From NCBI RefSeq assembly GCF_036588685.1, contig NC_086384.1, positions 53,816,001 through 53,880,000 of the forward strand: a stretch of 64,000 nt of DNA. The letters are read 5' to 3'. The stretch is from Mytilus trossulus (lineage: Eukaryota). Each line of letters starts with the position of its first letter. Within the stretch, counting starts at the first letter, position 1. The notes beneath the pieces were generated by a model, which searched no databases, was not told the DNA's origin, and saw nothing but the letters and a program-made list of their open reading frames with translations. This document shows positions 4,401-10,400 of the stretch, one piece after another. The position numbers and the translations under genes are program-made.

Positions 4401-7400
4401 AATAATGTTTTTATTACATTGTATATATTTTTATTTTCTAGATAGTAGCTGTGAAAATTTTAAGAAAAGATGTGCTGGCCCTTCCAGGTGCTTTTGAAGA
4501 CTTTGTAAAGGAAGTAAATGCCATGCATACATTATCTCATCCAAACTTGATAAGACTGTATGGGATTGTGTTATCAACTCCTCTCATGATGGTATATATA
4601 TTCTTTTATTTAGTGGCTTAAAAATTTACCTTTTGATTTATAAAAAACCCACATAGAAATCAAACCTAATGATATATGCCAAGCTAATAAAATTAATCTC
4701 TTTAAGCTGGTACCCAACACTTTCACTAAAATTAATTTGGCTCATTTAATTTTCGTAAAATTTTGGCAATGTATTTACTTTGACCCTTTAACAAAAATAT
4801 ATAAAAAAAAAAAAAATTGAACCAACCGTTTTGTCAGAAAAATGACATATAGCATCACAGCTAGTAGTAGAGCACTTGGTGCCTTATCATCAAAATATTT
4901 TCTGGTGGATGGTTTTGATTACGAAACATACACAAAATTATTTACAAGTACAGTTGTTCCAATCATGGACTATGCATCAGGGGTCTGGGGTTACAAGCCT
5001 TACGATAATATTGAAAGACTCCAATTCAGAGCAATCAGGACATTTATGGGAGTTGGAAAATGTAGTCCGATTCCGGCTATTTGTGGTGATATGGGTTGGA
5101 CCCCTGCATATATCCGTCGCCAGTGTAACATGATAAGACTTTGGCATAGAATAACAAGTATGCACGTAGGTCGAATTCCAAATCGTATTTTCCAATGGGA
5201 TTCAACTTTATCAGAAAAATATAAGAAAACATGGTACAACGATCTAAAATCAGTAATGGAAAAATGTGAACTTTTGGAACTATTTAACAATAACTACACA
5301 AATGGACTAAATGTAAAATTTATTGCCAACTACTCAGATCTTTTGCTCCGTCAAAAACATCACGATAAATGGAAACTGGATATTGTGAACATGCCAAAAT
5401 TACGAACTTTAGATGTCTTGAAACAAACTTTGAAAAACAGCAATACATTACCACTAATATGACACCACAACAGAGATCGACTTTAGCCAGAATGCGTTGT
5501 GGGACTTTTCCGTTGGAATTAGAACTTGGGCGTTATCGTGGTATCCCGTCAAATAGACGTTTTTGTAAAGTTTGCAATGACAATGTATCCGTTGAGGATG
5601 AAAATTAGTTAAATGTCCTTTATATTTGTGTGAAAGAAACAATGCCTTCGCTGACTTTCAGCAACGTAACAACATAGACTTTTCCGTTCTTTCTGATGAC
5701 GAAATACTCATTAAATTGCTAACTACAGACTGTAAACTAGTGTCAAACTATATATTCAATATTTCAAAAATCAGAACTCAGTTACTTTCTCATTGTGATA
5801 TTTAAATAATCTTGTTTTAAAATGTTCTTGAAGTATTAATTTCATATCTTCTATATTAGCACAAATTATAGATATTAATTGACAGTGCTTCGTAAGCCTT
5901 TGAAGGCTGGCTGATTGACGTTGTATTAATGTATGTAAAATAATTGTTATATCAGGTTGCACTATAAATAAAATTATATATATATAGCAGTTGGACAAAC
6001 ACTTATTTTGATCATTGAGATGCTTAGTATTCTCTTGAGAACACAATGTCATTAAAAAGTTCTGCTGATTTTACAGAGTTATCTCCCTATAGTGTTAGGT
6101 ACCACCTTAAAAAGATAACCATATTCATCTTAATTTGTAGATGGCAAAATGAAAAGTTTTAATACTCTCAAACACATATATTAGAAAAACAAAAGATATA
6201 TATGGGGTATATCCATGACACAAAATCGGTACATGCACAGCAACAAAAAAAAACGAAAAAAACCACACCTCATTATGCCTTCTTTTTTTTTTACAGTAAC
6301 AATATTTACTGTGAAGCAAATTGGACCAATGACACAAAAAACTGATACATACCAAATTAAATGCAAAATATGATATTAAATTGCAAAACTTTATTTATCA
6401 TTTAATTGCAAAACTTTATTTATCATTTAGGTAACAGAGTTATTTACCTTTGTCTCTATGCTAGAAAATCTACACAAGGATTTTCACAATATAATGCAAA
6501 CTTCAGCATAGATTATTTGGATAGTTGCTAATCTTTTTTTTATACTTTTAGGTAACAGAGTTAGCTCCCTTGGTTCTATGTTAGTTATTTTTTATACTTT
6601 TAGGTAACAGAGTTAGCTCCCCTTGGTTCTATGTTAGTTATTTTAACACTTTTAGGTAACAGAGTTAGCTCCCCTTGGTTCTATGTTAGTTTCGTTATAC
6701 TTTTAGGTAACAGAGTTAGCTCCCCTTGGTTCTATGTTAGTTATTTTTATACTTTTAGGTAACAGAGTTAGCTCCCTTTGGTTCTATGTTAGTTATTTTT
6801 ATACTTTTAGGTAACAGAGTTAGCTCCCCTTGGTTCTATGTTAGTTATTTTTTTATACTTTTAGGTAACAGAGTTAGTTCCCCTTGGTTTTTTTATACTT
6901 TTAGGTAACAGAGTTAGCCCCCCTTGGTTCTATGTTAGTTATTTTTACACTTGTAGGTAACAGAGTTAGCCCCCCTTGGTTCTTACTTAATTTGTAGATG
7001 GCAAAATGAAAAGTTTTAATACTCTCAAACACATATATTAGAAAAACAAAAGATATATATGGGGTATATCCATGACACAAAATCGGTACATGCACAGCAA
7101 AAAAAAAAAAAGAAAAAAACCACACCTCATTATGCCTTCTTTTTTTTTTTTTACAGTAACAATATTTACTGTGAAGCAAATTGGACCAATGACACAAAAA
7201 ACTCATACATACCAAATTAAATGCAAAATATGATATTAAATTGCAAAACTTTATTTATCATTTAATTGCAAAACTTTATTTATCATTTAGGTAACAGAGT
7301 TATTTACCTTTGTCTCTATGCCTGAAAATCTACACAAGGATTTTCACAATATCATGCAAACTTCAGCATAGATTATTTGGATAATTGCTAATCTTTTTTT

Positions 7401-10400
7401 TATACTTTTAGGTAACAGAGTTAGCTCCCTTGGTTCTATGTTAGTTATTTTTTATACTTTTAGGTAACAGAGTTAGCTCCCCTTGGTTCTATGTTAGTTT
7501 TGTTTATACTTTTAGGTAACAGAGTTAGCTCCCCTTGGTTCTATGTTAGTTATTTTTATACTTTTAGGTAACAGAGTTAGCTCCCCTTGGTTCTATGATA
7601 GTTATTTTTATACTTTTAGGTAACAGAGTTAGCTCCCCTTGGTTCTATGTTAGTTATTTTTTTTATACTTTTAGGTAACAGAGTTAGCTCCCCTTGGTTC
7701 TATGTTAGTTATTTTTACACTTGTAGGTAACAGAGTTAGCTCCCCTTGGTTCTATGTTAGTTATTTTTATACTTTTAGGTAACAGAGTTAGCCCCCCTTG
7801 GTTCTATGTTAGTTATTTTTACACTTGTAGGTAACAGAGTTAGCCCCCTTGGTTCTATGTTAGTTTTGTTTATACTTTTAGGTAACAGAGTTAGCTCCAC
7901 TTGGTTCTATGTTAGTTATTTTTATACTTTTAGGTAACAGAGTTAGCTCCCCTTGGTTCTATGTTAGTTATTTTTTTTTATACTTTTAGGTAACAGAGTT
8001 AGCTCCCCTTGGTTCTATGTTAGTTATTTTTATACATTTAGGTAACAGAGTTAGCTCCCCTTGGTTCTATGTTAGTTATTTTAACACTTGTAGGTAACAG
8101 AGTTAGCCCCCCCCCCCCCCCCCCCCCCCTTGGTTCTAACTTAATTTGTAGATGGCAAAATGAAAAGTTTTAATAGTCTCAAACACATATATTAGAAAAA
8201 CAAAAGATATATATGGGGTATATCCATGACACAAAATCGGTACATGCACAGCAAAAAAAAAAAACGAAAAAAACCACACCTCATTATGCCTTCTTTTTTT
8301 TTTACAGTAACAATATTTACTGTGAGGCAAATTGGACCAATGACACAAAAAACTGATACATACCAAATTAAATGCAAAATATGATATTAAATTGCAAAAC
8401 TTTATTTATCATTTAATTGCAAAACTTTATTTATCATTTAATTGCAAAACTTTATTTATCATTTAGGTAACAGAGTTATTTACCTTTGTTTTTATGCCTG
8501 AAAATCTACACAAGGATTTTCACAATATCATGCAAACTTCAGCATAGATTATTTGGATAATTGCTAATCTTTTTTTATACTTTTAGGTAACAGAGTTAGC
8601 TCCCTTGGTTCTATGTTAGTTATTTTTTATACTTTTAGGTAACAGAGTTAGCTCCCCTTGGTTCTATGTTAGTTTTGTTTATACTTTTAGGTAACAGAGT
8701 TAGCTCCCCTTGGTTCTATGTTAGTTATTTTTATACTTTTAGGTAACAGAGTTAGCTCCCCTTGGTTCTATGTTAGTTATTTTTATACTTTTAGGTAACA
8801 GAGTTAGCTCCCCTTGGTTCTATGTTAGTTATTTTTTTTATACTTTTATGTAACAGAGTTAGCTCCCCTTGGTTCTATGTTAGTTATTTTTACACTTGTA
8901 GGTAACAGAGTTAGCTCCCCAGGGTTCTATGTTAGTTTTTTTTATACTTTTAGGTAACAGAGTAAGCCCCCCTTGGTTCTATGTTAGTTATTTTTACACT
9001 TGTAGGTAACAGAGTTAGCCCCCCTTGGTTCTATGTTAGTTATTTTTATACTTTTAGGTAACAGAGTTAGCTCCCCTTGGTTCTATGTTAGTTATTTTTA
9101 TACTTTTAGGTGACAGAGTTAGCCCCCCTTGGCTCTATGTTAGTTTTGTTTATACTTTTAGGTAACAGAGTTAGCTCCCCTTGGTTCTATGTTAGTTATT
9201 TTTATACTTTTAGGTAACAGAGTTAGCCCCCCTTGGTTCTATGTTAGTTTTGTTTATACTTTTAGGTAACAGAGTTAGCTCCCCTTGGTTCTATGTTAGT
9301 TATTTTTACACTTGTAGGTAACAGAGTTAGCTCCCCAGGGTTCTATGTTAGTTTTTTTATACTTTTAGGTAACAGAGTTAGCCCCCCTTGGTTCTATGTT
9401 AGTTAATTTTACACTTGTAGGTAACAGAGTTAGCCCCCCTTGGTTCTATGTTAGTTATTTTTATACTTTTAGGTAACAGAGTTAGTTCCCCTTGGTTCTA
9501 TGTTAGTTATTTTTATACTTTTAGGTAACAGAGTTAGCTCCCCTTGGTTCTATGTTAGTTATTTTTTATACTTTTAGGTGACAGAGTTAGCCCCCCTTGG
9601 CTCTATGTTAGTTTTGTTTATACTTTTAGGTAACAGAGTTAGCTCCCCTTGGTTCTATGTTAGTTATTTTTATACTTTTAGGTAACAGAGTTAGCCCCCC
9701 TTGGTTCTATGTTAGTTTTGTTTATACTTTTAGGTAACAGAGTTAGCTCCCCTTGGTTCTATGTTAGTTATTTTTATACTTTTAGGTAACAGAGTTAGCT
9801 CCCCTTGGTTCTATGTTAGTTTTTTTTATACTTTTAGGTAACAGAGTTAGCCCCCCTTGGCTCTATGTTATTTTTTTTTATACTTTTAGGTAACAGAGTT
9901 AGCTCCCCTTGGCTCTATGTTAGTTTTTTTTTTTATACTTTTAGGTAACAGAGTTAGCCCCCCTTGGCTCTATGTTAGTTTTTTTATACTTTTAGGTAAC
10001 AGAGTTAGCTCCCCTTGGTTCTATGTTAGTTATTTTTATACTTTTAGGTAACAGAGTTAGCTCCCCTTGGTTCTATGTTAGTTATTATTATACTTTTAGG
10101 TAACAGAGTTAGCTCCCCTTGGTTCTATGTTAGTTATTTTTACACTTGTAGGTAACAGAGTTAGCTGCCCTTGGTTCTATGTTAGTTATTTTTATACTTT
10201 TAGGTAACAGAGTTAGCTCCCCTAGGCTCTATGTTAGAGAGACTACACAAGGAACAGGAGAAGATATTGTTATCCAGTCTTTGTGATTACGCTATACAGA
10301 TAGCGACGGGAATGAGTTATCTAGAATCCAAACGTTTTATTCACAGAGATCTGGCTTGCAGGAATGTTTTATTATCCCCTCCAGATAAGGTTTGTATCTG

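Follow-up and report, generated by a model that had tools for sequence, protein, structure and literature searches.

A 52-bp tandem array derived from an exon's own 3′ splice site in an ACK-like kinase gene of Mytilus trossulus

The DNA analyzed here is a stretch of 64,000 nucleotides from the mussel Mytilus trossulus (assembly GCF_036588685.1, contig NC_086384.1, positions 53,816,001 to 53,880,000 of the forward strand), which is referred to below as the window. It has a G+C content of 32%, contains zero N, and belongs to an assembly of 1.3 Gb. A gene on its plus strand encodes what is, by homology, an ACK/TNK2 (ACK1/TNK2-like) non-receptor tyrosine kinase. One intron in the kinase-coding part of this gene is largely made up of tandem copies of the boundary at its own downstream end, so that dozens of acceptor-like sequences precede the acceptor of an exon encoding the catalytic loop. 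The anatomy of this array, the coding consequences of its copies, and its resemblance to published repeats at splice junctions indicate that it is probably a minisatellite tolerated at a splice junction.

The ACK gene and the layered array in its kinase intron

To identify the host gene, exons were searched singly and unjoined, and joined reading frames were computed only with a local script. Twelve collinear coding blocks were detected on the plus strand between ∼1280 and 24106 using tblastn with two mollusc proteins (P0009 and P0011, the latter from a land snail). Together, these blocks cover residues 11–1193 of the scallop protein P0009, which in Ylistrum balloti and Pecten maximus goes by the name activated CDC42 kinase 1-like. 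The SAM-like N-terminus, the SH3 region, and the long C-terminal tail are all collinear with mollusc ACK1-like proteins, and exon 1 of the gene lies ∼5.2 kb upstream of the window start. The ACK-specific parts of P0009 are without matches elsewhere in the genome, indicating that the ACK gene is single-copy. A pseudogene was ruled out, given that the gene is single-copy and that all 12 of its exons in the window are open.

Two of the coding blocks flank the intron of interest. In phmmer searches against the PDB, the upstream exon (4442–4591) corresponds to residues 39–87 of human ACK1 chains (E = 3e-15) and the downstream exon (10204–10389) to ACK1 residues 88–148 (E = 2e-20), with ACK1 being the best kinase match. 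Identity in tblastn is 84% between the upstream exon and the scallop ACK1-like protein P0009, and 75–79% between the downstream exon and mollusc ACK-like proteins. No protein or transcript fragment of the kinase exon from the same species was found, the closest match being 89% identical. Because the two exons correspond to segments that abut in the ACK1 protein, the sequence between them is one phase-0 intron:

4442–4591, plus strand: upstream kinase exon of 50 codons, phase 0, with its donor GT at 4592–4593
4592–10203, plus strand: intron of 5612 nt, phase 0
10204–10389, plus strand: true kinase exon of 62 codons with the HRDLACRN catalytic loop and a donor GT at 10390

The repeated unit is 52 bp long and consists of 18 nt of intron (polypyrimidine tract and AG) and the 34 nt with which exon 10204–10389 begins. 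Tandem Repeats Finder (TRF) reported the 52-bp period at 6536–6889 (6.8 copies, 93% matches) and again at 7397–10237 (53.9 copies, score 3192), a count that runs over one spacer. An anchor scan on the acceptor core identified 58 acceptor-like copies including the true site at 10204, so that 57 extra copies, hereafter called decoys, lie within the intron. These comprise 54 short 52-bp units and three older, longer pseudo-exon copies (6431, 7291, and 8467). The complete units (n = 52) have a mean identity of 95.8% to their consensus, and ten of them match it fully. The units carry many private substitutions, some have indels, one has an expanded run of C, and unit 8850 has AT in place of AG, leaving 56 of the 57 decoys with an AG. 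In all, 74% of the intron (∼4.1 kb, 6076–10203) arose as the acceptor edge downstream was duplicated over and over, which makes this a case of intron growth by accretion from the intron's own acceptor.

A first-pass annotation of this DNA had described an array at 6541–10237 with about 54 tandem copies of a unit made from the gene's own polypyrimidine tract, AG, and ∼34 nt of exon, the real exon at 10204 being simply the last unit and running on into unique sequence. The composition of the unit, the number of short copies, and the terminal position of the real exon were all confirmed by our parse. The array is not continuous, however, but is broken by two spacers (6984–7411 and 8131–8586), with a third copy of the spacer standing in front of it:

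6113–6551, plus strand: spacer copy 1, with a dispersed-repeat fragment, two 25-bp repeat copies, and the old pseudo-exon at 6431
6552–6983, plus strand: sub-array 1, with 9 units of ∼52 bp
6984–7411, plus strand: spacer copy 2, with the old pseudo-exon at 7291
7412–8130, plus strand: sub-array 2, with 14 units and a run of ∼25 C in the last unit
8131–8586, plus strand: spacer copy 3, with three 25-bp repeats and the old pseudo-exon at 8467
8587–10203, plus strand: sub-array 3, with 31 units and an internal duplicated block of 8–9 units, ending at the true AG (10202–10203)

The three spacers (∼430–460 bp) are 90–95% identical to one another in pairwise comparisons and break the array into higher-order blocks. 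Each of them combines a dispersed-repeat fragment, two or three 25-bp repeats, and a pseudo-exon. In keeping with a block structure, sub-arrays 2 and 3, and partly sub-array 1, begin with the same unit variants. Compared with the true exon over its first 51 nt, the pseudo-exons show 71–78% identity (78% for the copy at 6431); they reach deeper into the exon than the 52-bp unit does and are more decayed. The 25-bp repeat occurs in two to three copies directly upstream of each old pseudo-exon (6375–6429, 7235–7289, and 8386–8465). The beginning of this repeat is similar to the acceptor edge; speculatively, the repeat may be a still older and decayed layer.

Long homopolymers were also observed, with ∼25 C at 8108–8130 in the last unit of sub-array 2 and ∼17 G at 1427–1445, just past the donor of the SAM exon. 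These runs may be real expansions or may be sequencing or assembly noise.

Source of the array and reading frames of its copies

The array is private to this locus. When the genome was scanned with a 31-nt core of the unit, allowing up to 3 mismatches, 48 matches were obtained and 48/48 were at the ACK locus, with 0 matches for the reversed control, a result well outside what chance would give. A BLAST search of the genome with spacer plus array gave the same result for the array portion, which matches this locus alone. Part of the spacer (∼8180–8275), on the other hand, has >35 matches elsewhere at 79–92% identity on many contigs, while the rest of the spacer and the array are not dispersed. 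A pattern scan of the genome revealed no second haplotype copy of the array in the assembly, and a metagenome scan with the 52-bp unit returned 0 matches.

The exon half of the unit encodes VTELAPLGS, a segment whose conservation in ACK kinases extends from human to molluscs, and the position of the intron just before the Val of this segment recurs in genomic open reading frames (ORFs) of several other species. The exon must therefore be the source, and the satellite the derived sequence. The unit is bounded on both its intron and its exon side by a short direct repeat, GTTAG, which would fit an origin by slippage or microhomology-mediated duplication followed by unequal exchange.

Use of a decoy cannot give rise to a variant kinase. 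When the upstream exon was joined from position 4591 to each of the 57 upstream copies, a stop codon was encountered within at most 159 nt in every case (57/57, local script). This outcome follows from the phase of the intron, which is 0, together with the fact that each unit ends in TAG: inclusion of a multiple of three nucleotides leads into a TAG in frame, while inclusions of other lengths cause a frameshift, so that every use of a decoy is nonproductive. The expectation from the first-pass annotation that only the final AG yields kinase is thus upheld, as is its statement that more than 50 near-identical acceptors stand before the true one.

Ten decoys are identical to the true acceptor over positions −20 to +20, and the true site is distinct from them only in what lies downstream. 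From +35 to +84 the sequence after the true site is 60% purine and 26% T, whereas after the decoys it is ∼36% purine and 48% T, and the real donor lies at +186. Candidate branch-point adenosines are visible by eye in the units, and structure prediction for the array RNA gave nothing unusual by which the decoys might be hidden (z = +0.65). In 56 of the 57 decoys the AG is directly followed by GT, and the site reads AG/GTAACA. By hand count, this sequence agrees with the donor consensus CAG/GTAAGT at 6/9 positions, with the real donors at 4591 and 10389 agreeing at 6/9 and 7/9 positions, respectively. The GT in question belongs to the Val codon at the start of the exon.

Junction repeats elsewhere in the gene and in published loci

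The kinase intron is not the only place in the ACK gene where a splice junction has been multiplied. Two further arrays were identified:

929–1301, plus strand: independent acceptor array of the SAM exon, with 40/78-bp units (TRF, sequence, echo scan, and motif scan)
17965–18047, plus strand: tripled donor of the SH3 exon, with a 28-bp unit that joins 7 nt from the end of the exon to 21 nt of the intron (TRF and sequence)

The unit of the SAM array combines a pyrimidine tract and AG with ∼20 nt from the beginning of the SAM exon, the true start of which is at 1282. At least five of its decoys keep a CAG/ACTTGG-type core, in which the AG is followed by ACTTGG and a donor-like GT is missing. Upstream of this array lies a 28-bp satellite with >32 copies (window positions 1–899, running off the window start). 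Its unit holds ∼20–24 nt of internal SAM-exon coding sequence (1291–1314), and the satellite resembles an outer, older layer produced by the same accretion. In both acceptor arrays, the outer layer is the older one and extends further into the exon. At the SH3 exon, the true donor is the first of the three copies.

Tandem repeats as a whole occupy ∼28% of the ACK gene (window positions 1–24100, hand tally from TRF), compared with <1% of the next 40 kb (24000–64000) and ∼1.5% in 110 kb surrounding 30 other kinase loci. The 52-bp array looks like one part of a junction-duplication phenomenon that is gene-wide or genome-wide.

Tandem repeats that span an exon–intron boundary have been called mirages, and their founding paper is said to be that of Canestro et al. 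from 2002. The first-pass annotation knew of no earlier description of the arrangement, but such repeats have been published for the amphioxus genes encoding Adh3, the globins BflGb6 and BflGb9, troponin C (TnC), and PGBD5 (PMC3087553, PMC3902484), and for the variable number tandem repeat (VNTR) in intron 7 (IVS7) of human F7 (PMC1557585). The amphioxus mirages were reported without any disturbance of splicing, show concerted evolution within a cluster, and vary in length between haplotypes (PMC3087553, PMC3902484). The ACK array resembles them in that its units span the exon–intron boundary, the authentic junction is terminal, and many units keep the AG/GT. Acceptor-side as well as donor-side arrays occur in both cases, with several per genome or gene.

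There are also clear differences. In size, the BflGb6 mirage has 3–6 units of 150–160 bp and the Adh3 units are 10–72 bp long, whereas the ACK array has 57 copies over 4.1 kb. It is further set apart by its three higher-order blocks, by the older layer embedded in it, and by its host, which is a mollusc rather than a cephalochordate. Length instability and normal splicing have been demonstrated for the amphioxus mirages. No report of a mollusc mirage was found in the library of literature searched. Judged by its structure, the ACK array appears to be a very large mollusc example of the published kind, and would take the phenomenon beyond amphioxus into a mollusc, on a far larger scale.

The F7 IVS7 repeat has a 37-bp unit, and its first element spans the exon 7/IVS7 boundary; it gives rise to a row of identical pseudo-donors that are silent, though functional in principle (PMC1557585). 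The tripled donor of the SH3 exon is a direct analogue of this VNTR, with the true donor standing first in both. The 52-bp array presents a different problem. In F7 the repeat is on the donor side with the true site first, and the choice of site is explained by scanning in the 5′-to-3′ direction. In the ACK array the copies are far more numerous and the true acceptor comes last, and consequently the scanning rule derived from F7 cannot explain the choice.

A model attributed to Rogers, together with a paper entitled 'Modern origin of numerous alternatively spliced human introns from tandem arrays', reportedly holds that introns can originate from tandem arrays or by duplication of AGGT proto-splice sites. 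The ACK array is similar in that its units lie within a gene and carry splice signals, but it differs in enlarging an old and conserved intron.

A repeat at the corresponding exon was also noticed in a protein from another organism (P0005, on an ENA contig of 20.9 Mb). Its ORF of 125 aa is made of ∼2.5 in-frame copies of a 50-aa (150-nt) unit, in which ∼32 residues from the end of the ACK kinase exon are joined to a read-through past its donor. From its translation, P0005 would be a donor-side junction repeat at the orthologous exon of another species.

Competing explanations for the array

We favor the explanation that the array is a locus-private junction minisatellite, or mirage, most likely without a selected function, and place its probability at roughly two-thirds. 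The array has the structural marks of a mirage: head-to-tail units of minisatellite size, a spanned exon–intron boundary, the authentic junction at one end, and specificity to a single locus. Its history may have begun when a 52-bp segment over the intron/exon boundary was duplicated in tandem, and unequal exchange would then have amplified this segment. An older, longer duplicate of the acceptor edge and a dispersed-repeat fragment would have become embedded, and the resulting spacer-plus-array block would have been triplicated. Throughout, the conserved exon at the 3′ end would stay in place as a fixed master copy, with older copies being pushed upstream and decaying there. Tolerance of the array would come from the fact that only the last AG heads a real exon, whose body is rich in purines from +35 and whose true donor lies at +186. 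Exon definition would thereby keep the decoys largely silent, and any use of a decoy would be self-limiting, as it ends in a stop or shifts the frame, and such transcripts would presumably be removed by nonsense-mediated decay (NMD). Since the same gene contains two further junction arrays, a general mutational process would be a simpler explanation than selection acting on the dosage of ACK. Normal splicing despite functional-looking splice sites, as reported for published mirages and for the F7 VNTR, likewise counts in favor of a tolerated mirage.

Several observations weigh against this interpretation. At two synonymous sites, the 34 nt in the exon disagree with the consensus of the units, and the exon is thus not simply the current template for new units. 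The true acceptor is also transcribed last and would be disfavored if splicing were first come, first served, making some cost to or effect on splicing plausible. Finally, arrays are present at 3 of the ∼23 junctions in the ACK gene, while ∼0.4 would be expected by chance if eight array units were placed randomly along the gene (rough Poisson p ∼0.01, calculated by hand). This excess hints at a bias toward junctions beyond plain neutral slippage.

The first-pass annotation had proposed that the array acts as a splicing/NMD rheostat or as a sponge for U1/U2AF. In a functional decoy array of this sort, the 56 AG-bearing modules would bind U2AF/U2 (and U1 at AG/GTAACA) and either divert part of the pre-mRNA into products with premature stops that NMD degrades or slow removal of the intron, with copy number tuning the dosage of ACK. 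Each unit has the pyrimidine tract and AG needed for such a role along with the candidate branch points visible on inspection, ten units match the true site exactly from −20 to +20, all decoy products are nonproductive, and tandem arrays are strongly concentrated in the ACK gene body. However, nothing points to a role specific to ACK: a like architecture is present at two other junctions of the gene, one of them without GT after the AG, which argues against an ACK-specific adaptation. Moreover, published mirages leave their mRNAs unaltered (PMC3087553, PMC3902484), and the units are decaying, as seen from the lost AG, the indels, and the expanded C run. A dosage function of this kind is therefore unlikely.

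Recursive splice sites, or ratchet points, are found in long Drosophila and vertebrate introns and consist of a 3′ splice site adjoining a donor, with the consensus (Y)nAG/GTAAGT. The decoys are similar to them in placing a 3′ splice site beside a donor-like GT (AG/GTAACA). Use of a decoy AG might in this manner regenerate a donor that is then re-spliced to a later AG without leaving a trace, or the 52-nt segments might be included as poison micro-exons. The AG/GT present in 56 of the 57 decoys, with a donor-like site matching the consensus as well as one of the real donors (6/9 versus 6/9 and 7/9), counts in favor of such a ladder. The GT is, however, a coding constraint of the source exon, forming part of the Val codon at its conserved start and lying at the same position in ORFs of other species, and the decoys belong to a recent tandem array rather than being single conserved sites. 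In addition, the SAM array is tolerated with AG/ACTTGG in place of a GT, so recursion is unnecessary for tolerance. Known recursive splice sites are located in very long introns, whereas this intron is just 5.6 kb. We consider a recursive ladder or a set of poison exons doubtful.

It is also conceivable, if improbable, that junction minisatellites in this bivalve genome arise from a form of duplication tied to splice junctions or transcription, or are retained by selection, with acceptor arrays serving as kinetic ladders or decoys that set the rate of splicing and the loss to NMD for dosage-sensitive genes such as ACK, and copy number forming a fast-mutating expression dial.

An assembly artefact, in which the array has been inflated or mis-joined, is quite improbable. 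Long minisatellites are error-prone in assembly, the run of ∼25 C in unit 8094 is suspicious, and the amphioxus BflGb6 mirage was indeed mis-assembled in a draft genome (PMC3087553). A false duplication would yield identical copies, however, and the units instead show private substitutions in an ordered higher-order pattern, with spacers that are 5–10% apart. This diversity of units and divergence of spacers argue against a simple duplication in the assembly, although they do not prove the copy number. The window is without N, and whether the array exists is independent of its exact copy number. The least probable reading, a transposon-borne or genome-wide satellite that resembles the exon or from which the exon start was recruited, was rejected because only part of each spacer is a dispersed repeat, whereas the 52-bp unit is found at no other place in 1.3 Gb and its exon half is conserved from molluscs to humans.

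The array amounts to a natural experiment in the choice of 3′ splice sites, in which the sole productive site comes after 56 AG-bearing copies, of which ten are identical to it over 40 nt. If splicing proves to be clean, downstream exon content rather than the acceptor or the order of transcription would strongly fix this choice in a mollusc. If it is not clean, the locus would be an uncommon example in which gene dosage is set through NMD by a hypervariable repeat.

Two other elements of the ACK gene were noted in passing. The intron between exons 19501–19597 and 21675–21762 contains a very homogeneous 53-bp array (19703–21223) of 23 copies with 96% matches, flanked by 77-bp variants. Its unit contains CTGATGAG and GAAA, which are words of a hammerhead-like core; an Rfam search of the whole window at the gathering threshold gave no match, the 53-bp unit included. 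The second element lies in the unique part of the intron that carries the 52-bp array:

4843–5610, plus strand: retrotransposon-like ORF fragment, 5′-truncated and in sense orientation (read from the sequence), which resembles the C-terminal part of an ORF2 from a retrotransposon of the non-long terminal repeat (non-LTR) class

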